From Thecamonas trahens ATCC 50062 (lineage: Eukaryota > Protista > Apusomonadida): a stretch of 64,000 bases of DNA. Made by a program: the position numbers and the translations under genes. Location of the stretch: contig NW_013657627.1 in NCBI RefSeq assembly GCF_000142905.1, positions 224,204 to 288,203 on the forward strand. Reading direction: 5' to 3'. Below the pieces are notes generated by a model. It saw nothing but the letters and a program-made list of their open reading frames with translations. It did not search any database and was not told the origin of the DNA. The first letter of the stretch is position 1. The number at the start of each line of letters is the position of its first letter. Shown here piece by piece: positions 1,575-23,044 of this stretch.

Positions 1575-2216
1575 ATGGCTACTGACAACACAGTCCAGCA
1601 GCTTGCCGGAGCCGTCCTCCCGACGGCCCTCCGTGAGCTTCTTGGAGCACAGGGCCAAATCAAGGAGATCGCAGAGTACTTTGAGCAAGCGTACGCAGCC
1701 GATGCCGACAAGAACAAGGTCTTTTCAGAGACGCAGGTCTACACCAAGAATGCTCTTGGCAACGTTGCCTTTCATGTCAATGTTGTGGGCTCGCACATGG
1801 TCTCCTTCCTCAACAAGCAGTTTGATGAGCTCGATACCATGCAGCTCCAGTTTGACGCCGTCATGTCGAGGCTGAACAACGCTCGCTATACCCTTGGCCT
1901 CTCGAACTTGTCCTCCTACCTCGCTCCTCGCATCTACAAGACTCGCCCGGTCTCTACTCCTCTCAAGGGCGATGCCGTTCCCGAGGGCGCTCGCATGCTT
2001 GATCGCTACGAGCGCCGTCCTGTCGATCTCTCCTCCCTCGACGATGTCGGCATCACCCTCCGTAACTACAAGATGTCCACAAAGCCCCGCGTTGACCTCC
2101 GCCCGGCTGTCACTCCTGCCTCTAGCTCTGCCGCCCCGTCGTCGCCTGCCCCACCGCCCTCGCCGGGAGGTGCTGCACCGCCTACGCCTTTTTGTTGCAT
2201 CTCCGGTTTTGTGGGG
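1575..2216 (+). CDS. ABI: Abl-interactor (ABI/ABIL) WAVE regulatory complex subunit; 3' end lost in assembly gap
   Basis: ABI N-terminal helical region (IAEYFEQAY..DADKNKVFSETQVYTKNALGNVAFHVN..MVSFLNKQ), HHR-like motif RYERRPVDLSSLDDVG, then a Pro-rich segment running into Ns. Confidence 0.88.
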
Positions 2217-3450
2217 NNNNNNNNNNNNNNNNNNNNNNNNNNNNNNNNNNNNNNNNNNNNNNNNNNNNNNNNNNNNNNNNNNNNNNNNNNNNNNNNNNNN
2301 NNNNNNNNNNNNNNNNNNNNNNNNNNNNNNNNNNNNNNNNNNNNNNNNNNNNNNNNNNNNNNNNNNNNNNNNNNNNNNNNNNNNNNNNNNNNNNNNNNNN
2401 NNNNNNNNNNNNNNNNNNNNNNNNNNNNNNNNNNNNNNNNNNNNNNNNNNNNNNNNNNNNNNNNNNNNNNNNNNNNNNNNNNNNNNNNNNNNNNNNNNNN
2501 NNNNNNNNNNNNNNNNNNNNNNNNNNNNNNNNNNNNNNNNNNNNNNNNNNNNNNNNNNNNNNNNNNNNNNNNNNNNNNNNNNNNNNNNNNNNNNNNNNNN
2601 NNNNNNNNNNNNNNNNNNNNNNNNNNNNNNNNNNNNNNNNNNNNNNNNNNNNNNNNNNNNNNNNNNNNNNNNNNNNNNNNNNNNNNNNNNNNNNNNNNNN
2701 NNNNNNNNNNNNNNNNNNNNNNNNNNNNNNNNNNNNNNNNNNNNNNNNNNNNNNNNNNNNNNNNNNNNNNNNNNNNNNNNNNNNNNNNNNNNNNNNNNNN
2801 NNNNNNNNNNNNNNNNNNNNNNNNNNNNNNNCGTATCCGGGAGCGCCGCCGCCGCCGCCGCCTTAATCTACCGCACTGCGGTGGCCATCTTGCTCAACTC
2901 TCCGCCTCAACTTTATTTTTGCGCTGCGGCGAATCTCACTCTCTCTGCACATGACCTTCCGAGTGAATTCGATCGTCGACAGAAGTCAGGCGGCAGCAAA
3001 CGCTCACCAATCCCAATCCTATCTAGTTTGACAATCCATTGAGTGAGTGTGCTCCCAATGTTTGCCACACATCAGCCGACACGAAGCGAGGGGTGCGGAG
3101 CCGGCGAGCTGGGGCGAAGTAAGACCTTCCATCACGCCCCACCAAGCCGACTACCACCGTCAACCACCCACCTTGTGCCAGAGCATATGTCCGCTCATCT
3201 AGCTGGCCACTACCCGACATACCAACAGTATGAGAAGGGCATGCCGCGTTCGCCGAGAATAGAACAGCGGGGAAATAGGCGCGAAAGAAGCGGCATTTTT
3301 TTTTTGTCCAGACACTCTGCCGGTCGCAGCACGTGCGCGGCGAAATTCACTGCTGCGGGGGATCGATAGATGTTCTGCGTGGTTGGGAAAGTCAACTGGT
3401 AACCCCTCACTCCGGCCAAGGCAACTACAGTCAAAGCTGTCTGTCCAAAG

Positions 3451-4821
3451 ATGAAGTTCACGTATGGAGCAGCACCTACACAACGTGTTCGGTGGACGGA
3501 GGAGGAGTCGCTGCTTCTTGCTGAGCTCTATCTCTCGCATGGTGTGACGCAGGGAGTGAAAGGCGGTATGTTGGAGTCACTCGTTGCCACCTTCAACGAG
3601 CGTCTTGGCTACGACCAGCCCAACCACCCACGGTACCGCGACAATAAGTCCATTCAAAACCGCATGTCCCGCCTTCGCACCATGTGGCGCAGCCGGAGGA
3701 AGAAGGGCCCGCACGCCTATGATGCCTACGCCTCGGTCGAGGAGCGCCGCTTCCACAAGCGGATCGACGACCTCCTCGAAAGGATCGAAGACAAAAAATG
3801 CTCAAACAGCGCGGTGCACCGGTCGGCCAAACGCAAACGCGGCACCTCGTCGCGCAAGTCTGTCTCGCACCGAGTCTCCTCGGTCTCCTCAGTCCATGGC
3901 CGCCCTGGCAACTTTGCCCACCACCAGAGGAGCATGTACCCTGCCTCGTCTGCCATCCCGACCTCGCCGTACATGGCTTCGTCCATGACCGGCCTCCACT
4001 CGGGCCTTCTCCAACACCAACAGAGCCAGACAGGCAACCAGCAGGCTGCTGCTGCTGCTGCTGCCGCCGCCGCGTGGGCAAACCCCATGCTCTCGTTCAT
4101 GTACGGCATGGGCTCACCAGCCTCCTCCGCCGCCCCGGGCGCAGGCGCAGGCGCAGGCTCCGACCCGCAGCAGGCCATGTACCTGCCTTTTGCCTACGCT
4201 CAGATGCAGGCCGCAGCCTACGCCCGCTTTGCCATGCAGCAGGCGCAGGCTGCGCAGGCTGCGCAGGCCGCGCAGGCCGCGCAGGCCGCGCAGGCCGCAC
4301 ACTCGACGTCACACGCCCCCTCAGCCGTCTCCAACGACGGCGCCTCCGCACCCACGCGCCCCGAGTACCTCGCCCACCCGTCGCATCCGACCGCATCCGT
4401 TGCCTCGGCCGCTCCCACTAGCCATCTTGCGCCCACCGTGGCGCCCTCGGCTGAAAAGTCGCCCCTTGTTGGCGATGCTACTGCCACAGGCTCGCCGTTC
4501 TTTGGCGACGCCGCCGCCTCGCTTGCCTCAATGATGCTGCCGTCCACCTCGCGTGAACGGTCGCAGTCGCCCACCTCGGCTCGCGCCACGGCCTTTGTGC
4601 CGCCCATCGCCTCGTCAACCGGTCTTGATCTTGGTGCCGGCTCCCTCGCGTCGAACAACAACGACGACGACGAGGGCGCCCCGCCGCTCAAGAAGGCCCG
4701 CGGTCTTGCCCCCTCCAATGACGTCGCTCCGTCTCCCTCTACCTTTACCTTGCCTGGGAAGTCGAGCGGCTCACCCGCCCGGGAGCAGAACGCTGCTGAC
4801 GTTCTCCTTGCACTCTCGTAA
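3451..4821 (+). CDS. Myb/SANT-like (trihelix-type) putative DNA-binding protein with Ala/Gln-rich tail
   Basis: RVRWTEEESLLLAELY...VATFNERLG...RDNKSIQNRMSRLRTMW resembles a Myb/SANT-like domain. Basic NLS-like stretches (AKRKR, PPLKKAR) and low-complexity A/Q repeats follow. Confidence 0.6.
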   Translation: MKFTYGAAPTQRVRWTEEESLLLAELYLSHGVTQGVKGGMLESLVATFNERLGYDQPNHPRYRDNKSIQNRMSRLRTMWRSRRKKGPHAYDAYASVEERRFHKRIDDLLERIEDKKCSNSAVHRSAKRKRGTSSRKSVSHRVSSVSSVHGRPGNFAHHQRSMYPASSAIPTSPYMASSMTGLHSGLLQHQQSQTGNQQAAAAAAAAAAWANPMLSFMYGMGSPASSAAPGAGAGAGSDPQQAMYLPFAYAQMQAAAYARFAMQQAQAAQAAQAAQAAQAAQAAHSTSHAPSAVSNDGASAPTRPEYLAHPSHPTASVASAAPTSHLAPTVAPSAEKSPLVGDATATGSPFFGDAAASLASMMLPSTSRERSQSPTSARATAFVPPIASSTGLDLGAGSLASNNNDDDEGAPPLKKARGLAPSNDVAPSPSTFTLPGKSSGSPAREQNAADVLLALS

Positions 4822-5569
4822 GTGAATTCTTGCCCACTATCACGCTCTCCTTGCCTCTCTCTCTCTCTCTCTCTCCCCCCTCCACACCTCTTTCCCTGTA
4901 CCCTCTACGCCGTCGTCGCCATCTCTATCCGCTAAAAAGGCGTGCTTGCTCCACCACCCAGCCTTCCGCGCGTGCGCCACCGCAAAATGCGGCCCACATG
5001 CCACCACCCCCGGGCTGCCAGCCAAACAACCTCCTACAGAGCCCTTCGCTTGGCTGTCACCACCCTGCCTATGCTCTACCCCCTTACTACCCCCGTAGCC
5101 TCCCCTCCTTCCCGCCTTCCTCACTTTAACTCCCCTCGTTAGCCCCACCGCCCGCCCATACCCGCCAGCTCACCCCTCCCTCCCCCCCACGTGGGGTGAG
5201 GGAGGGGGGCAGGGGCATGTGGCGGAGCAACGCACGTGACCAACCGCTTCGCGCGCGGCTGGTGATCCTCACTTTTTTTTTTTTGCTCTGATGATGTGAA
5301 CCAGTTTGACGTCCACTGGACAATTCTTTATGCTTGCCGGGGAAAAAGTTGCGGCAGGGCGACGGCCAGTTCACTTTCGCGTTGCAAGTACCCTGCAAAG
5401 CGGCTTGCAAGCAGTAGCAGTGCAAAGGAGTCAAGCAAACTTGCTCATCAAGGCAAACAATTCATGCCGAGAAAAGTCCTGGGTCGCAGCGTGCATAGTC
5501 ATCAAGCTGAGAAGCGGTCGAGGATAATCGTCAAGGACGGTCGAGAGCGATCGAGGTCCGGTGGGTGAG

Positions 5570-12365: not shown

Positions 12366-13225
12366 CTTACATGTCTGATTATTATTGAACAATACCCCCC
12401 AACGCAGTCCCTCCCTCCCCCCCCCCCCCCCCCTACCTCCCTCCCTCCCCCTCACCGGCCAACCGGCCGCCACCTTCCGACCACCACCACCGCTGCCGCT
12501 CGCCACACCACCAACCCACGCCGAACCGTTCTCACGTGTAACACCTCTCCTCAACCTGCACCGTCCCGTTTCTCTGGGTGCTGCACGAGTACGTACCACA
12601 CCCCCTCCGTCCCCCCCCTCCCCCCCTCCCCCCCTCCCCCCCTCTTTCATTTTTTCTTCCCCCCGCCCCCTTCCCCCCCTCCACGTCCTGGTCTGTCTGT
12701 GCCAGCGGGCGTTGCGGAAATGAAAGTCATCGAATATTGTCACGAACGTATCAATTGTTTTCAATGGGGCAAAGGAAGAGGGCAAAGAGTGATGGCAGCA
12801 GCAGGTCAATCGTGTTGATCATTGGCTTTCTCAATGTTACCAAACAATAATGTTCATGAGAGTCTATGGAGCTTGGGGGGGGATGGGGGAGAAGGGAAGG
12901 GAAGGGAAGGGAAGGGATGGGAGGGAAGACGGCGTGGCGCCTACTTTTGGCACTTTTTTGTTCCACACACTCGCCCGCACTCCCACACCCCTACCACACA
13001 CTCACACTCTTTAATCACTATACAAATGCTACTATGACCTCGGTCGTGTCCTCGCCTACACGCTCGTATGCGTTTTGCCTGTTTCACCCAATGCTACCCC
13101 TCTCACACCCTCGCCGCTCATCACCTCCATTTCGTACCACTCTCGGCCCGTCGCTCGTCGCTCGTCGCTCGCCGCTCGTCGCTCGTCGCTCGTCGCGCGC
13201 CCCGCCTCTCTCAACAGGGCTGGGC

Positions 13226-16200
13226 ATGATGAACAACGGACGCCAGTCTCGCTCCAAGTGGGCCGTGTACCTCGCGGTCCCACTGCTGGTGGCTACGGTT
13301 GTGGCGATGGTGGCGCTCTCGCACACCCGCTCATCGCTTCGTGTGGAGCCGGCATCGGCAGACGAGGCCAAGACACAGACTGCTGCGCCCGTCTCGCTCT
13401 CCCACGCCACCGCCGAGCTGCGCAGCTGGATGGAGGCGCATGCTCGTGGCGAGGCGTCGGAGGCCGACGGCGTGGCGCTCGCGGCGCAGCGCGCGGCTCT
13501 GCTTGCCGATGCGGCGCTGTCGGACCCGGCGGCTGTCGCCAGCCATGCTCTGTACCCGGCCGCGCTGGCAGGCCTTCCGCCTGCCGTTGCGGCCCATGCC
13601 GAGACGTGGGTGACCGGCGAGGCCACCATCGAGATGCTTTGCCCTTTCCCCAAGCCGGTCGACCTCACCGCGGAAAAGGCGACCTACGTGCAGGAAGTCG
13701 CTGCTGACCCGACAAACTTGCGGTCGTTTGACCGGCTCGACGAGCGTGCCCAGGCCCAGTTTGAGGCTCGCGAGTCGAAGCGGCTGGTCAAACTTGGCGC
13801 GCGAAAGACTGCGGCGCGCGCCGTCGCCACCAGCGACGACCACGATCATGACCACGACCACGACCACGACCACGATGACCACGATCACGAGTACGACTAC
13901 GTTGTGGTGTACAAGACTGGAACACATGCGACCACCAAGTTCCAGGCCTCGGTCTATGGCGTGCGCGACCAGCGGGCGGCGCGCGAGGCGGTTCCTGTCA
14001 CGGGCGTGCTCGTCGGCTCGCGGCTGGCGGTGCTCGAGTCGCCGATGGTGACGATGTCTGCGGCTGACGGCCAAGTGCTACTGGAAAGCCACGGGCGAGC
14101 GCTCGAGGCGGCGACGCCTGCCGCAGCGGCGGGCAGCGCGAGCCACGTCGGCGTGCACGGCTCGCGGCTGGTCCACTTTGCCAACGAGGCCGAGGCTGTG
14201 GCTGCGGCCGAGTCTGCGCATGCGGCCAACGAGGCCGAGTTTGAGGCCAAGTTTACCTCGTACACGCCGACGGGCGACATCCGGACCATCGTCTTTCTGG
14301 TGCAGTTCTCGGACGAGGCTGCACCGGCGACGACCGAGACCAACTACGCGCAGACCATGACAACGGTCAACACGTACTGGAACATCAACTCGTATGGACT
14401 CTCGCAGTACACGCCGATCGAGTACGAGATCATCACGCTCTCCAACTCGAAGAGCTCGTACTCGTCGGGAGGCTCGACGTGCCCGATCGACTTTGGCAAG
14501 TCGTCGCTCCTCGACGACGATGTGTGGGCGGCTTCGAGCAACCTCGAAGGCGACTACCAGCGGTACCTCATTCTCTTCACTGAGTTTACTGCTTGTCCGT
14601 GGGCCGGCCTCGGCTCGATCGCTGCGTCAGGCACGTGGATCAACGGCCTGTTTGACGCCACGGCGCACTGGCACATTGCCGCGCACGAGCTTGGCCACAA
14701 CTATGCGTTCCGGCACGCCAACGCGTGGTACGGCGGCGGCACGTCGCCGGTCGGCTCGAGCGGACAGACGCTGCCGTACGGCGACGACTTTGACATTATG
14801 GGTGCCGTCACCATCGACACTGACCGCTCCTCGTTCCATGTGAATACTCACAAGAAGCATGGTGTCGGATGGATCTCCGACTCGGACCGCCAGACGGCCT
14901 CGGCCTCGGGTCAGTACCGCATTTTCTCGCACGACGCCATCGACTCGAACTCAGGCGTCCGCGCTGTCCGCATCCGTCGCGGCTCGGGCTCGTCGACCTG
15001 GTACTGGCTCGAGTACCGCCAGAACATTGCCTACGCACCGGCGACGCCGTACTTTTCCAACGGCATCAACGTCCACTGGGCGTACGAGCTCTCGTCGTTT
15101 GAGACCGAGACCGACCTCCTTGATCTCACCCCGGCGTTCATGACCGAGAACCTGTACGACGACCTGCTCGTCAACTCGCCGCTGCAGATCGGGCGGACGT
15201 TCTCGGACCCGGACGAGCAGATCCACTTTACGCCCATCGGCACGTCGTCGCTCGGCGGGCGCGGCTACATTGACGTCTTTGTCAGCTTTGAGGCCGCCAA
15301 CTCGGCGCCAGTCATCAACTCGGTAACCGCGTCGTGCACCCAGCCCGAGGTCGAGGAGGCCGTCCTGCTGGTGGTCGACGTGACCGACCCTGACGGTGAC
15401 TTGCTCGCTTACTCGTGGGACTTTGGCGACGGCTCGCTCTCGTCGGTCAACTCGATTGCGGTCTCGCACGGGTGGGCCACGGCCGGCGCCAAGGAGGTTA
15501 CCGTCACTGTCTCGGACATGCGCGGCTCGGTGACAACCGCCTCGGTCTCGCCTCAAGTTGTCGTTGCCGCCACCGGCCAGGGCGTCTGCCCCCCGTGTCC
15601 CAACGCGTGCAACGGGCACGGAATCTGCTCCGGCGGAGTCTGCGCCTGCTCGCCGGGCTACACCGGTGCCGACTGCTCGCAGGCCATCGGAGTCACACAG
15701 CTGGTTCCCAACTTTGGGCCCATCGGCGGCGGCAACGTCGTCACCGTCCACGGCTTTGGCTTTAACGGCACCTCGTTTATCTGCAACTTTAAGGGCATCG
15801 GCCTGCGGCCGGCGAACCGAGTCGACGAGACAACGGTGACCTGCACGGCGCCACCGGCGCTGTCCAAGTCGACTGTCGAGCTCGAGGTCTCGCCCAACTC
15901 GGGCTTGCACTACACTGGCTCGCGGATCGGCTACACCTTTGGCGGCGGCTCGTGCCCGAACAACTGCACCCAGCAAGGCTCGTGCGACATCGGCCCGGGC
16001 GTGTGTACCTGCTACGCCGGCTTCACCGGCCTTGACTGCTCGACGGCCATCTCGGCGAGCACGCTTGTGCCGGCTGACCAGGGCCCCAAGTCGGGCGGCC
16101 TGCCGGTGACGGTCACCGTCTCGCCGGCGTCGGGCGTTTTTGACGCCACCGGCGCCACGCCCATGTGCCGCTTCGGCCTGACCAAGCCTGTTCCGGCCAC

Positions 16201-17900
16201 CATGGTCGGCCCACAGCTGACGTGCACCACCCCGCCATATGGCGCCGGCGGCGTCACCGTCCCGCTCCAGGTCTCGCCCAACGGAGTCGACTTTACCAAC
16301 TCGAGCCTCACCTTTACCTACCGCACCGCGGTGGATCTGGTGGAGAACGTGGCGTCGACGCCCAAGTCGATTGTCTCGGGTGAGTACGCCTTTTACCGCT
16401 ACTGGCTCGGCGATGTCACCGGGCTCACGGTCGATGTGACTCTTGCGGCGTCGACCGGCGCGCCGGAACTCTTTGCCCGCTCTAACATCGTGCCCATCAA
16501 GGGCGTTGTCGGCTCATTCTCCCTCGCGGCGCCCGGTACGCTCACCCTCGGCGCAACCGACCTCACGGCCGGCTTCCTCTACATCTCCGTCCTCACCACC
16601 GGCGCAGCGTCGGACTTTACGGTCACACTCGCCATCACTGGAACCCACACAGTGGCGGTCAACGCCGGCAACCCGTTGCGCGCGCTCGCATCGGCCGGAA
16701 CGATCAACTACTACGCGGTGAGCCACGACGGGACGACGAACGCGGTGGTGGTCACCGCCGACGTCATCGGAACCGGCACCCCGCCGACCCTGTACCTCTC
16801 CGGCACCGAGACGGCGCCGACTGCCACGACGGCGTCGTCGTCGGGCACCACCGTGGTCATCCAGGCTTGTGAGCCTGCAGGTACATACTACGTCGGCGTG
16901 GAGGGCGACGGCGTGTCGTACGGACTCGAGGCCCGGACCGAGGCGCCCCCGTCCCGGGCACGCTCCCCGGCGAGCTGCCGGGCAAGATCATCTCTGCGCT
17001 CCGCGAAGAGTCGTCGGTCAATGTCACCTTTGCGCTCGCGGGCTCTGCCAATGACTACGACTTTGACCTCCGGTACGATGTGTTCTTCCGGCGCAACCAG
17101 GCCGATGTGGCGTTTGAGACGCCGTGCGACGTCAAGGTGAGCGGGACGGTGTTCCGGCAGAACCTGGCCTATGGTGCGTTCTCGGACCCGCTGCTCCAGG
17201 TCTACCCGCTCGACGCGTCCACCAACTATCAGGTCGCCGTCATCGTCAAGTCGACGACGGGCGTCGAGGCCATGTACCTCCCTGCGCTGCAGAAGACCAA
17301 GCCGCCGCCGATCCCCAAAGCCCTGCTCTACGGACTCATGGCCGGTTCGGTCGGCATGGCCCTCATCGGCGGCTGCGTCGTCGGCTTCTTCAAGCTCCGC
17401 AAGCGCAAGCGCAAGAAGCGTAAGCACCGCAGCCACGCCCGCCGTCGGCGCAAGACCCGCCGCGGCCGCTCACACGCAGGCGGTGCCGCTCCGGGCGTCG
17501 CCGCCGCCGCTGGCGCAGGCCTCCCAGCGCGATCGCCGTTGGGAAGCGCGGCCCCCGCCACGCTGAGGCCCGCCAGGACCGCTCCAAGCCGGCCCGCCGC
17601 ACGGCCGCCTCGGGCGGCGGCTCTCGGGCCACCGGCGGCGTCGCAGGCCCGCCACCCGGCACGGCCGGCGCACGCTCAGGCGCACGCTCCGGCCGCACCC
17701 GGCCCACCACCGCGCCGTCGCGCCAGCGCCAGCGCGCCATCGCCCGCGGCGACTTTGTGCCGCAGTACGAGAACGAGCTTGGCTTCCGCAAGGGCCAGAA
17801 GCTCTACATCCTGCAGAGGATGGATGCCGGCTGGTACAAGGCTGAGCTCGGCGGCAAGGTTGGCCTTGTCCCGGCCTCGTACGTCAAGCTTGTGCAGTAG
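13226..17900 (+). CDS. Multidomain membrane metalloprotease: M11/gametolysin-like domain, PKD, EGF, IPT/TIG x2, PPC-like, TM, cytoplasmic SH3; two apparent frameshifts
   Basis: HELGHNYAFRH zinc motif and YGDDFDIMG Met-turn; PKD (YSWDFGDG); EGF (CPNACNGHGIC..C.C.PGYTGADC) x2; TIG (PNFGPIGGGN.VTV.G..F). The frame changes near 16950 into a TM helix plus RKRKRKKRK. It changes again into SH3 AIARGDFVPQYENELGFRKGQKLYILQRMDAGWYKAELGGKVGLVPASYVKLVQ, with TAG at 17898-17900. Confidence 0.8.
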
Positions 17901-17977: not shown

Positions 17978-19330
17978 ATGACCGCCGTCGCCGGTGGCGC
18001 TCCTCGGTCTCTCGCGGCTATCTTTGCACACGCGCAATCGGGCGATGTGGCCAAGCTCTCTGCCGCACTCGACGACCTGGGCAGCGAACTCGGCGACGAC
18101 TTCGGGCCCGGCGCATTGCCAGCTGCGCTCGACACGCTTGGCAGCGACGGACAAGGCGCTCTCCATCTGGCAGCGGCCTCGGATCAACCGGCAGCAGTCC
18201 AAGCACTCCTTGCTGCCGGCGCATCGATGACAGCTCGCAACGGATCGGGCAACAACCTCGCTGGTATCGCCGCCTCCCGCGGGTGCATGGATGTCCTCCG
18301 TTGGCTCGCCGATCTCGTCTCTGCCGGCGGCGACGACAACAACCTTGCCGCGACTGTCGTCACCGCCACCAACAAGTGGAATGAGACGCCGACAATGCTT
18401 GCTGTTGCAGCCGGTGAGCTTCCTGCTCTCCGGCTCCTCCTCACCCTCGCTCCCGTCGCCGCTACCCTCACCACCACCCGCGATGCCTGGAACCGCTCCG
18501 CCATCGACATTGCCCGTGACCAGGGCGTGCCGGCCGTTGTCCAGGTCATCGACGCCCACCTCGGCTCGACCTCTGGCTCGGTTCCGGAAGCCGGCTTTGC
18601 TGCCACGACACAGGACGGTGTCGGTGGAAGCACAGGGCCGTTGCCAGGCTCGCCTCTACCGCACTCGCTTCCGCCTTCGCCTCCGCCTCCGCCTCCGCCT
18701 CCGCCTCCGCTTCCGCCTCCGCCGCCGTCTTCCTCGTCGTCAACCAAATCGTCTCCTGCGGGCATCGGGTTGGCGCGTTTGGGGAAAGCGGTGGCTGGGG
18801 CGATTGGTAGCGGGACGATCAAGCTGCGCAAGGTGGAGGGCGGGCCAAGTGTGCGGTCGATGTTTGCAGAGGAGAGCAGAGGGGCAAGGGTGGTGACGAC
18901 GGCAAAGTCGCGCGGGCCACCGTACACCCGGGTCCTCTCCAAGCTCATCGAGGCACCAGGCGATTTTGCGGTGGTGGAGGAGCTACTGGCGGCCGGTGAT
19001 GTGGATCCTGCAGGGCTGGACATGTTTGGTCTACCAGCGCTGCACAAGGTGGCGGCGTGGAGCAAGCCGGGCCTGGTGCAGCTGGTTGCGAGCGTACTGA
19101 GCGACGACGAGCTGGTGGCGACGGCTGGCGACTCGGGCTTTACGGCGCTGCACATGGCGGTGGAGATGGGCGCGGTGGGCGGGGCTACTGCGGTACTGGC
19201 AGTTGCAGAGGCGCGCAAGGTCCGCGCGCGGCTGGTGGCGACGAGAGACGGGGCCGGGCGGACGGCAGGCGAGCTTGCGTGCGAGCTGGCAACGATGCCC
19301 TGCGAAGTGACCGACGAGCTGGCAACATAG
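17978..19330 (+). CDS. Ankyrin repeats - polyproline - WH2-like motif - ankyrin repeats
   Basis: Ankyrin motifs GQGALHLAA, ETPTMLAV, GLPALHKVA, GFTALHMAV. Central PPSPPPPPPPPPPLPPPPP followed by LGKAVAGAIGSGTIKLRKVE. Confidence 0.8.
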   Translation: MTAVAGGAPRSLAAIFAHAQSGDVAKLSAALDDLGSELGDDFGPGALPAALDTLGSDGQGALHLAAASDQPAAVQALLAAGASMTARNGSGNNLAGIAASRGCMDVLRWLADLVSAGGDDNNLAATVVTATNKWNETPTMLAVAAGELPALRLLLTLAPVAATLTTTRDAWNRSAIDIARDQGVPAVVQVIDAHLGSTSGSVPEAGFAATTQDGVGGSTGPLPGSPLPHSLPPSPPPPPPPPPPLPPPPPSSSSSTKSSPAGIGLARLGKAVAGAIGSGTIKLRKVEGGPSVRSMFAEESRGARVVTTAKSRGPPYTRVLSKLIEAPGDFAVVEELLAAGDVDPAGLDMFGLPALHKVAAWSKPGLVQLVASVLSDDELVATAGDSGFTALHMAVEMGAVGGATAVLAVAEARKVRARLVATRDGAGRTAGELACELATMPCEVTDELAT

Positions 19331-19354: not shown

Positions 19355-22300
19355 TCAGGAGAGCGCCTCAAAGTAGGCAAAGTTCTCCAGCATGTTCTCG
19401 AGCAGCGAAGAGAGCTCCGGGAAGAGGGTGACAAATACGGAGAAGAAGGGCTGGACGACAAACTTGATAAAGTTGACCTCGAGCGGCGCAAGCATTGAGG
19501 TCTCGCGGTCAAAGATAGGGGTGACGGGCAGGCCGATGTCGCGCTCGCGGTCGCCTTGGGCGAGGAACTCTGCAAAGACCATATCTGCCCAGTCCTTGAA
19601 GATGGCGAGCGGGCGCGTGGGGTTTGAGATGTCTGCGGCGTGGAGGATGACGCCGGCGAGGAGCTTGCGGTCCGACTCGGAGGTGGGGTCGAGCTCGCGG
19701 GTCTGGACGACGACCTGGAACTGGCCCATAATTTCAAAGTGCGAGGCCATGTCTGTGACGAGGATGGCGTGAACAGCGATGGCGCGGAAGGACGCAGTCT
19801 GATCTGCCGAGAGGACCGAGGTGATGTCGCAGGCCGGCGAGGAGAGGACGCGGAAGAGGAGCGCTGCGTGATGGTTCTCAAGGACCGAGTTGTCGTTGTA
19901 GAGGCGAGCGAGCGGGGCCTGGACGGCGACCAGAAAGTCGTTGTTGAGGCCGGGGTGGTTGACATCGTGCGCCACAGCGGCGCAGAGGAGGGCGAGCGAG
20001 TCGAGCGGGGTGAGGAGGTCCGCCGCGCCCGAGTGGGTGATGTAGTAGTAGACGGACTGGGTGACGTCGGCGGCGTGGACAAAGTTATGATACGGGTTCG
20101 GCGACTTGTAGAGGTGCGAGACAGCGACGACAAAGTTGTAGACGAGCTCTTCGGAGAGGCCAAATGCGGCCATGACGCCAGCGGCATCAAACATCGCGAC
20201 GAGACAGACGATGAGGTCGGGCTTGGAGAGCGAGGTGGCGGCAAACGAGAGCGTGTCGATGTGGTGGCGGGCTTGGGAGAGGGTGAGCGAAGCGTGCTTG
20301 GTAGCGTCGGCGACGAGGGCGGCGACGCACGAGGTGATGGCGTCGACCCAGACAAAGGCGCCCCACGCGGTGGCCTCAACACCCGATGACGGCTCGTAGG
20401 CGAGAGTACCGGCGACAGGCGGGGCGTCGGGCGGGATCGAGGACGTCGAGCCTCCAGCGTCACGGAGCGGCGAGTCCTCAAGATGGCCGACGAGACCGGC
20501 GGCCTGCGAGCACGGCGACTTGGAGCGGTCGCGGTCGGACGAGTTGTCGAGCGAGGCGACCGAGGAGATGGAGCGGCGGAGGGCGTGCGACTTGCCGCGC
20601 GGGCGGCGGGTGAAGGTGTCGAGGATCCACTCCGAGTGGGAAGACATGCGACGAAGGCGCCCGGGCGGGGCCGGCGGGACCTGCGACGGACCGGTCGACG
20701 GTGAGGTCGGTGACATGTTGCGGCCGTAGCGCGGAAGAGGGGCGGCGAGCGAGGCGCGGCGCTTCTGGCCGCGGGCCATGGCGGCGGCGCGGTGGATGGT
20801 CATGGTGTCGTCGGAGGAGACAAGCGGGAGCGGCGGTGGCGGCGAGCGCGAGACCGAGATGGACTGGTGCGAGGTTGGCGGCGAGGACGAGGCAAACTCC
20901 TCCCCGGACGAGCCGCGGGCGCCGCCGCCCGGAGTGGGCGAGGTGGTGATCCGCGGCTGAAAGAGGTCGCCCGAAGCAAGTTGCGAGATGACACTCTGCA
21001 GCTCGTAGCGGACAAAGTCGGCCTTGTGGGGGTTGCCGAGGTCAAGCCTGGTGAGCTCCTGAAGGCGCGAGACGAGCGAGAGGAGCGGCGTCTCAACGAG
21101 GGCGAGCTTTGTCCGCATGTCGTCCATGTGCGACTCGAGGTGGGTGTGCTTCTTCCGCTCGGCCTCGATGAGCGAGAGCTTCCAGCGGAGAGTGACCTTG
21201 CGCATGGCATCGATGGCCGAGTGCTGGTGACCGGCACGGCCGCGGGCGAGGCCCATGCGGTGGAGATGGGCCGGGAGCGAGCTCTTCCGGCTGGGCTGAA
21301 GCATGGTGGGCGGGGCGAGGCCGCGGACGCGGTGGGCAAGCGCGGCGGGCACAAACGGTTTGACGAGGTAGTCGACAACGCCATCGGCCATAAACGCCGC
21401 GATAATCTCGACAGAGTTACGCGGAAAGATGGCAAAGACACGCGGAATGTGGCCCATCTTCTGCTTGACAAGGGTGCGGAGCCAAGAGTGAGCAACTTGG
21501 ACGCCACCAACCTCAATGTCAAGGACAATGAGGTCGACGTGCGCCGAGTCGAGGACAATGAGCGCGTCCTCGGGGTCGGGCGCCTCGTACACGTCGGAAA
21601 AGTTAAAGTGACGCAAGATGTCGGCGGCTGAGATGGCCGACGAGGTGGGCGGCGCAACAGGAATGCCGTTGTGCAGCGCAATGTCGGTCCCGCCGTCGAT
21701 GTGGCACTGGACGGTGCCCCACTCATCCGAGGCTGACGGGGCCAGGTCGGAGGAGGCAGTTGAGTCAGACGAGTCGGACGAGGACGAGTCGGACGAGGAC
21801 GAGGGAGAGTGGGCAGCCGACGCGGTGGCATTGGTGTCGTCCGAAATAGACGAGAGCGACGAGAGCGTCGATGCTGGCGCGCCGTGCTGGACCGGCGGAG
21901 CAAGGTGAGCGGCCGACGAGGCGGCGGCGATGGCGTGCGGGGCTGGGGCGGCGCTAGGGCCAGACTCGACCGAGCCGGTGGCCGAGAGTTCGAGCGAGGT
22001 CCGCGGCGACGTGGGGCTCCGCGGCGAGCTCTCGCCAGACGAGGTGAACGAGGGAATGTCAAGATTGTGGTGGTCCATCTCTCCGAGGCCGCTTGGGTTG
22101 GCGATCTCGGTGGCGGAGCGACGCATGGGGCGAAGAACTGGCGAGACGGAGCGTGACGGGTTTGGCGCCGGCTCGGGCGCGCCCTTGGCCGACTTTGCAC
22201 GCTTGCCGCGGACACGGTGCTTGCGCCGGCCGGAGCGGAGAAGAGGTGAGCTAGCCTTAGTTGTTGCCTTGGCAGTTGCCTTGGATCGCGAGCGCGGCGT

Positions 22301-23044
22301 CAGGTCCATGTTCATCGACTCGGCGAGCTTGCCGAGCGTGTCTGCAGCAAAGGCAACTATGAGAATGTCCTTGACAAAAGCCGACCGCTCGGGTGCAACC
22401 ATACTCTTTGTGGCGGGGAGATCTGGGACGCGATCGGTGCCAGTGGCATCGCCCGCAGCCGAGTCATCGGTCGCACCGCTGGCAGCCTTCCGCCACTTAG
22501 CCATTAGCCTGTTGCCTGGTGAGTCGACGCGGTTGCCTACACGGGCCAGACTCGCCATGTCCCGAGTGGCTGCATGCAGCGGGGCAGAGATGACCTCTGT
22601 CCGCCCGGGCATGTCCTCGATGTTTGTATCCGAGAGCGAGCGAGTTATGGCATGTGGCGGGAGACCAGCCAGAGAGCGACCATCACCAGAGTTACCCTCA
22701 GGAGAAGGAGGGACAAGCCTAGGTATGAGCGGTGAGGGCGGCATGTCTACCATCTGTTCCTCCGCCGCCGACAAAGACGATGATGACGATGACGATGACG
22801 ATGACGAGGAAGAAGACGATGACGAGTAAGAACGCCGAGCGCCACCACCACCAACAGCAGCAGCGCCACCACCACCACCACCACCACCACCAGCAGCCAT
22901 CCTCGCACTACTTGGAGATACCGACGACATGAGTGATGCTGTTGTGTTGGCTGTCTTGTCATGGCTCATTTTCATGCCATTGTGGCTTTCTGTCTCTCCG
23001 CAGCTGGACGACAGCGCGTCGTCCGAGTCCCACGACTGCGACAT
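19355..23044 (-). CDS. Class I cyclic-nucleotide phosphodiesterase with response-regulator receiver domain (RegA-like)
   Basis: PDE motifs NPYHNFVHAADVTQ, AHDVNHPGLNN, LYND.SVLENHH, TDMA.H, HAADISNP, EFLAQGDRER. REC motifs VDLIVLDIEV...GVVDYLVKPF at ~21320-21640. Confidence 0.9.
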   Translation of the reverse strand: MSQSWDSDDALSSSCGETESHNGMKMSHDKTANTTASLMSSVSPSSARMAAGGGGGGGGGAAAVGGGGARRSYSSSSSSSSSSSSSSSSSLSAAEEQMVDMPPSPLIPRLVPPSPEGNSGDGRSLAGLPPHAITRSLSDTNIEDMPGRTEVISAPLHAATRDMASLARVGNRVDSPGNRLMAKWRKAASGATDDSAAGDATGTDRVPDLPATKSMVAPERSAFVKDILIVAFAADTLGKLAESMNMDLTPRSRSKATAKATTKASSPLLRSGRRKHRVRGKRAKSAKGAPEPAPNPSRSVSPVLRPMRRSATEIANPSGLGEMDHHNLDIPSFTSSGESSPRSPTSPRTSLELSATGSVESGPSAAPAPHAIAAASSAAHLAPPVQHGAPASTLSSLSSISDDTNATASAAHSPSSSSDSSSSDSSDSTASSDLAPSASDEWGTVQCHIDGGTDIALHNGIPVAPPTSSAISAADILRHFNFSDVYEAPDPEDALIVLDSAHVDLIVLDIEVGGVQVAHSWLRTLVKQKMGHIPRVFAIFPRNSVEIIAAFMADGVVDYLVKPFVPAALAHRVRGLAPPTMLQPSRKSSLPAHLHRMGLARGRAGHQHSAIDAMRKVTLRWKLSLIEAERKKHTHLESHMDDMRTKLALVETPLLSLVSRLQELTRLDLGNPHKADFVRYELQSVISQLASGDLFQPRITTSPTPGGGARGSSGEEFASSSPPTSHQSISVSRSPPPPLPLVSSDDTMTIHRAAAMARGQKRRASLAAPLPRYGRNMSPTSPSTGPSQVPPAPPGRLRRMSSHSEWILDTFTRRPRGKSHALRRSISSVASLDNSSDRDRSKSPCSQAAGLVGHLEDSPLRDAGGSTSSIPPDAPPVAGTLAYEPSSGVEATAWGAFVWVDAITSCVAALVADATKHASLTLSQARHHIDTLSFAATSLSKPDLIVCLVAMFDAAGVMAAFGLSEELVYNFVVAVSHLYKSPNPYHNFVHAADVTQSVYYYITHSGAADLLTPLDSLALLCAAVAHDVNHPGLNNDFLVAVQAPLARLYNDNSVLENHHAALLFRVLSSPACDITSVLSADQTASFRAIAVHAILVTDMASHFEIMGQFQVVVQTRELDPTSESDRKLLAGVILHAADISNPTRPLAIFKDWADMVFAEFLAQGDRERDIGLPVTPIFDRETSMLAPLEVNFIKFVVQPFFSVFVTLFPELSSLLENMLENFAYFEALS

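Follow-up and report, generated by a model that had tools for sequence, protein, structure and literature searches.

Does a locus of the apusomonad Thecamonas trahens encode, in a single gene, a surface metalloprotease that is wired through the membrane to an SH3 domain of its own, although these parts lie in three different reading frames? The locus is found at positions 13226-17900 (+ strand) of a stretch of 64,000 nucleotides, here called the window, that covers positions 224,204 to 288,203 of contig NW_013657627.1 (strain ATCC 50062, assembly GCF_000142905.1); positions given without further label are those of the window, and all parts of the gene lie on its + strand. A preliminary description of this DNA had proposed a protease ectodomain of bacterial style joined through a transmembrane (TM) helix to a cytoplasmic SH3 domain. 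Our analysis favors reading the locus as one gene spread over three frames, coding for a type I membrane-anchored zinc metalloprotease, with the frame breaks most likely representing missing bases. We put the probability of this reading as a whole at about 0.8.

The open frame starts in frame 2 with an ATG at 13226 and runs to approximately 16950, continues in frame 1 from approximately 16948 to approximately 17530, and ends in frame 0, from approximately 17541 to a TAG stop codon at 17898-17900. The GC content is about 64% across the window. The periodicity of GC at third codon positions (GC3), computed independently of any alignment, sets in at approximately 13180-13300, tracks the three proposed frames and switches where they switch, so all three stretches appear to be coding. 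The layout in three frames that had been claimed from the letters was confirmed by the frame translations, by the GC3 switches and by alignment to the orthologue P0001, described below. The accompanying claim that the list of open reading frames misses the SH3 domain holds in part: the domain does lie in the third frame, but an open reading frame list made at 40 residues shows a portion of it, 17757-17900, with a GTG start. The three pieces were searched separately, and unbroken orthologues were used to stand in for the joined product.

Two such orthologues carry the argument that this is a single gene. P0001, retrieved by word search, is a protein of 1447 residues encoded by a single open frame on a contig of 5.2 kb from the Tara Oceans metagenomes (L004, 64% GC). 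By tblastn it is collinear with frames 2, 1 and 0 of the window gene, at 60%, 54% and 38% identity respectively, the SH3 domain included; P0001 likewise ends in SH3, and the stop codon in the window falls within one residue of its own. The T. trahens genome, searched as 28.7 Mb in 131 contigs, also holds a paralogue on contig C47, whose catalytic domain is 44% identical to the window copy and whose N-terminal hydrophobic segment is equivalent to that of the window gene. Downstream of the ectodomain frame of this paralogue, a TM segment, the basic run KKRKRRK and an SH3 domain (Pfam SH3_9, E = 1.3e-8) share one frame. A run of N (L003, approximately 3700-3950), perhaps an assembly gap, interrupts the C47 contig near the paralogue. 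The metagenome orthologue of the C47 paralogue, P0095 (1223 residues, 60-65% identical to it), was recovered in three independent assemblies and carries M11, PKD, TIG, TM and SH3 segments in a single open frame. The architecture is held by two paralogues in each of two species, and the duplication that gave rise to the paralogues would precede the split of these two known species. Because P0001 and P0095 carry all the parts in one open frame, the protease ectodomain, the TM helix and the SH3 domain can be assigned to one gene, and the single continuous frame predicted in the preliminary description is borne out indirectly, by way of these uninterrupted orthologues.

The catalytic domain, together with a C-terminal beta-sandwich, occupies 14267-15290 and is of metzincin type. 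Its zinc motif, HELGHNYAFRH, lies at 14684-14716. When the window domain is aligned to 12 relatives, all three His and the Glu are invariant, as is the Met of DDFDIMG (14783-14803), which sits 28 residues past the third His. The HEXXHxxxxxH motif noticed at the outset is present, and this conserved Met is the candidate for the Met-turn noticed with it. We modeled the domain with AlphaFold (AF2) at a predicted local distance difference test score (pLDDT) of 68.7, obtaining a model that is alpha/beta in its N-terminal half and a beta-sandwich in its C-terminal half. A Foldseek search with this model gave top PDB matches that are all metzincins (ADAMTS4, ADAM10, snake-venom adamalysins, PAPP-A and fragilysin), with probabilities of 0.96-1.0 and target-normalized template modeling scores of up to 0.5, and the modeled fold is metzincin-like. 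Searched by sequence, the PDB gave no match to the catalytic domain.

Assignment to a named protease family is less direct. The earlier M11 label survives as a marginal match to Peptidase_M11 (Pfam PF05548), which scores 22.3 bits against a cut-off of 21 (E = 7.9e-5) and is confined to positions 106-184 of the 303 in the profile, the third that holds the zinc site. P0095 scores 34.7 bits, and its match is likewise confined to approximately positions 97-184 of 303. The M6 family domain (NCBIfam TIGR03296) gave no match in the window domain and reached 32.7 bits in the paralogue against a cut-off of 110.8. Reprolysin_5, at 21.1 bits, falls below its cut-off of 27, and the Pfam scan gave no disintegrin match, which places the protein outside the ADAM/reprolysin (M12B) family. 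It would be safer to speak of a metzincin-type domain that belongs to a large bacterial family.

That family was delineated with an exhaustive search using the catalytic domain, which returned 3629 cluster representatives at E <= 0.001. Among these only P0095 is close (E = 1.8e-90), with the next match at 3e-35. When bacteria were scanned with one genome for each species, at least 258 relatives were confirmed, with Verrucomicrobiota and Myxococcota contributing most of them. The best are 28-38% identical over the whole catalytic module, and in bacterial relatives a PKD domain often follows this module. The identity to bacterial proteins agrees with the initial view that the catalytic and PKD block is bacterial in type. 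Scans of JGI metagenomes gave no further orthologues, only relatives at 27-31% identity, and the ESM Atlas gave no usable match. A phylogeny of the protease domain, envisaged in the preliminary description, was computed as a quick maximum-likelihood tree of 68 sequences, excluding loci with a best match shorter than 250 residues or containing a stop. All four eukaryotic copies fall into one clan with an approximate likelihood-ratio test (aLRT) support of 99, divided into two orthologue pairs supported at 99 each, a topology consistent with one uptake from bacteria and a later duplication.

Upstream of the catalytic domain, the start codon and an N-terminal hydrophobic segment (residues 10-34, Kyte-Doolittle mean 2.51) span 13226-13327; the segment probably acts as a signal peptide or signal anchor. 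A pro-region follows at 13328-14266, with only a weak ZrgA-like Pfam match below cut-off. An alternating His/Asp run within it (13835-13900) is also seen at approximately residues 26-38 of P0001 and in the C47 paralogue (L003, minus strand), and such a run might bind zinc or shield the active site until activation. Downstream of the catalytic domain, the PKD, EGF and TIG modules named in the preliminary description were all recovered by Pfam within the locus it had described. The PKD domain lies at 15299-15544 (PKD_4, 5.8e-14; PKD, 2.2e-11), and two EGF + TIG/IPT pairs occupy 15587-16327 (EGF_Teneurin, 4.4e-11; EGF_2 and TIG each in two stretches, TIG at 1.3e-8), in the order EGF 15587-15679, TIG approximately 15692-15907, EGF 15953-16042 and TIG approximately 16049-16327.

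Three beta-rich stalk modules, to which no family could be assigned, extend from 16328 to 17319 across the first frame break. No significant Pfam match was found in this stretch, and for the orthologous stretch AF2 gave an all-beta model of low confidence (pLDDT 60), its fold search returning generic tandem beta-sandwiches only, one of them the ColG collagen-binding domains. The "PPC-like" modules proposed earlier were therefore not confirmed: Pfam PPC (PF04151) reaches only 12.9 bits (E = 0.22) against a cut-off of 25.9, and the fold matches are generic. In the C47 paralogue the last ectodomain module looks fn3-like, with a weak Pfam fn3 match in P0095, unlike the last module of the window gene.

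The TM helix (17320-17397, 26 residues, Kyte-Doolittle mean 1.97) lines up with its counterparts in P0001 and P0095. It leads into a polybasic juxtamembrane stretch (17395-17490) with 19 Lys or Arg in 32 residues, which is conserved in P0001, P0095 and the C47 paralogue, confirming the TM helix and polybasic stop-transfer sequence as first described. With these charges following the helix and the Cys-rich EGF modules on its N-terminal side, the positive-inside rule is satisfied, and we infer a type I topology with a cytoplasmic C-terminus. The ectodomain would be extracellular and proteolytically active. A basic cytoplasmic linker rich in Gly, Pro and Ala follows at 17541-17735, as delimited by the frame-0 translation aligned with P0001.

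The SH3 domain and the stop codon occupy 17736-17900. The frame-0 piece scores 49.1 bits against Pfam SH3_2 (E = 4.5e-13, cut-off 21.8) and 44.5 bits against SH3_1 (E = 1.1e-11, cut-off 22.9). The nearest solved domain is the N-terminal SH3 of Grb2, in comparison with which binding-face residues are kept, namely the W in WYKAEL and, around the 3-10 helix, the P..Y. The profile matches and the Grb2 alignment together bear out the well-formed SH3 reported from the letters, and the tail reads as a canonical eukaryotic SH3 domain. TM plus SH3 does not form a common cassette of this genome: 12 other SH3 loci in it have no TM segment upstream.

How rare this arrangement is was judged from word searches over 5.8 billion proteins, the exhaustive search, the JGI metagenomes and full-text literature. 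A hidden Markov model built from the four tail SH3 domains found no SH3 in any other of 272 fetched proteins, which included the best 150 catalytic relatives. A full-text literature search, with subscription journals outside its coverage, found no paper combining such a protease with SH3. The architecture that the preliminary description did not recognize thus has no other example among the relatives examined or in the literature searched. These results point to a rare, lineage-specific domain combination, a membrane-anchored metzincin with a catalytic module of bacterial type, whose SH3 tail appears to be unprecedented.

Several points weigh against reading the locus as an intact, membrane-anchored protease of bacterial ancestry with a uniquely placed SH3 tail, one of them being that the frame breaks could be real. 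Both genes of the genome are broken ahead of the TM helix, and if the breaks are genuine then both paralogues would be pseudogenes, or truncated secreted proteases without TM helix and SH3. Break 1, from frame 2 to frame 1, lies at a run of five C (16946-16950) that is one base short; tblastn of P0001 places the join at 16948-16951, and GC3 switches at the same place. Break 2, from frame 1 to frame 0, is also one base short and lies within 17527-17541, with no finer placement: the P0001 alignment exits frame 1 after ...GAGLP and re-enters in frame 0 at GKRGPRH, and the GC3 switch falls between 17380-17499 and 17500-17619. The break in the C47 paralogue (L003 approximately 5499-5502, G000:C47, minus strand) is located just before the TM helix and beside a run of three C. 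All three breaks, two in the window and one on C47, shift the frame back by one base. Because all three are one-base deficits, assembly error is the likeliest cause, and the breaks are most likely missing single bases rather than biology. Genuine breaks are also at odds with the strong GC3 periodicity, the intact TM helix and the intact SH3 domain (49 bits) that lie downstream of them, and with the agreement of the stop codon with that of the orthologue, so we consider this alternative unlikely. An intron was considered for both frame changes. GTAAGC at 17420 resembles a donor site, but P0001 aligns through it in frame 1 to approximately 17525, and at break 1 there is no room for an intron. 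A window-wide count of GC3-based frame switches proved too noisy against introns and opposite-strand signal to serve as a measure of assembly error, and it was not used.

Two further points concern the active site. In the window copy an Ala replaces the Gly of the metzincin motif HEXXHXXGXXH, and the AF2 model falls below a pLDDT of 50 at residues 180-220, around the Met-turn, so that the geometry under the zinc site is unreliable. The substitution, together with EGF, TIG and PKD modules that are typical of adhesion receptors, would agree with a protein that is mainly an adhesion or signaling receptor, in which the protease-like domain, at least in the window copy, binds without cutting. We regard this as quite improbable given that all three zinc-binding His are invariant, as are the catalytic Glu and the Met, and that the other three members of the family (P0001, P0095 and the C47 paralogue) retain the Gly; so do the bacterial relatives, and the Ala occurs in the window copy only. 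The remaining points bear on partners, origin and novelty. Proline-rich partners are inferred from the tail being a canonical SH3; the tree leaves the bacterial neighbor unsettled and its root is arbitrary, so that no donor can be named; and the SH3 check covered the best 150 of the 3629 catalytic relatives. The idea that the SH3 domain, or the TM helix and the SH3 domain, forms a separate small gene downstream of a secreted protease, which the SH3's own frame and its possible GTG start at 17757 might suggest, is set aside as highly improbable because two paralogues in two species share the architecture, P0001 and P0095 carry the same segments in one open frame that no stop interrupts, the GTG start would remove the first SH3 strand as judged by alignment to the Grb2 SH3, and GC shows no intergenic drop over 16950-17900.

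For the single membrane-anchored protease that we favor, the parts suggest the following course. The N-terminal hydrophobic segment would route the protein into the secretory pathway, with the His/Asp-rich pro-region preceding the metzincin-type catalytic domain, itself of bacterial type. The PKD domain, the two EGF + TIG pairs and the three beta-sandwich modules would hold the catalytic domain off the membrane, and the single TM helix with its strongly basic stretch would fix the C-terminus in the cytoplasm, where a presumably flexible linker ends in the canonical SH3 domain. This domain would bind proline-rich partners, for example actin regulators or endocytic adaptors, and such binding would place, cluster or internalize the protease at cell-surface sites such as those of adhesion or prey contact. 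The protein may therefore function as a sheddase-like type I membrane protease with a tail that binds proline-rich ligands. As to origin, the catalytic and PKD block probably came from bacteria into the protist lineage and would then have been joined to eukaryotic EGF, TIG, TM and SH3 modules. Taken to its full extent, this history is a tentative proposal, in which an apusomonad-like lineage captured a secreted bacterial metalloprotease and, by fusing it to EGF/TIG, TM and SH3 modules, made a surface protease with a direct connection to the actin or endocytic machinery, a mirror image of the animal arrangement of ADAM and SH3 adaptor, that is maybe used in gliding adhesion or prey capture.

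The next gene, at 17978-19330 (+), starts 78 bases past the stop codon and encodes an ankyrin-repeat protein (Pfam Ank_2, 1.1e-16) bearing a long polyproline run, a conceivable ligand for SH3 or profilin. The C47 paralogue has no such ankyrin neighbor, so the adjacency may be due to chance. Convergent with the ankyrin gene, an open frame of 1229 residues at 19355-23044 (-) has a phosphodiesterase-like C-terminal half. Elsewhere in the window, GC falls to 41% at 2001-4000, as compared with approximately 60-69% in the remainder.

In animals, membrane-anchored metzincins (ADAMs and membrane-type matrix metalloproteinases, MT-MMPs) play a central part in shedding and adhesion, and SH3 proteins that bind their tails form the link to the cytoskeleton; apusomonads are a close outgroup of animals and fungi. 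In this apusomonad the link between protease and SH3 appears to be built in reverse of that in animal ADAMs, using a catalytic module of bacterial type. The locus would thus offer a clear and conserved case of domain shuffling after a probable gene transfer, and a simple system for asking how the cytoskeleton positions a surface protease. It also flags two genes for which one-base errors in the assembly have probably distorted the public models.

Among known systems, the bacterial secreted metalloproteases annotated as "M6-like / Peptidase_M11-like" are similar in their module of approximately 340 residues, catalytic domain plus beta-sandwich, at 28-38% identity, in the motifs HELGHNYG.xHAN and D.FD[IV]MG, and in the PKD domain that often follows; they differ in carrying Ig, RCC1, Calx-beta or CarboxypepD_reg modules and in lacking EGF modules, a C-terminal TM helix and SH3. 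The gametolysin and VMPs of green algae (MEROPS M11; PF05548) share the zinc site of HEXXHXXGXXH type at a Pfam score just over the cut-off, a comparison made through the Pfam profile and spanning approximately 80 of its 303 positions, and gametolysins are secreted cell-wall lysins not known to carry a TM helix or SH3. Animal ADAMs and MT-MMPs match the window protein on paper in having a pro-domain, a metzincin domain, EGF-like or adhesive modules, one TM helix and a tail in the SH3 network, and the nearest solved folds are the catalytic domains of ADAMTS and ADAM proteins. They belong to another catalytic family (Reprolysin_5 being below its cut-off), and the window protein has no disintegrin domain. 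ADAM tails carry PxxP motifs that are bound by SH3 proteins; the polarity of the tail is reversed in the window protein, whose tail is itself the SH3. On the cytoplasmic side, yeast Fus1 is a membrane protein with a C-terminal SH3 domain. Yeast Sho1 likewise has a membrane-anchored cytoplasmic C-terminal SH3 that would recruit a partner with a proline motif (PMC4411306), a likeness known at the level of the SH3 fold, but it has four TM helices and no enzymatic ectodomain. On paper, then, the window protein would resemble an ADAM or MT-MMP outside the cell and Sho1 inside it, while belonging to neither family.

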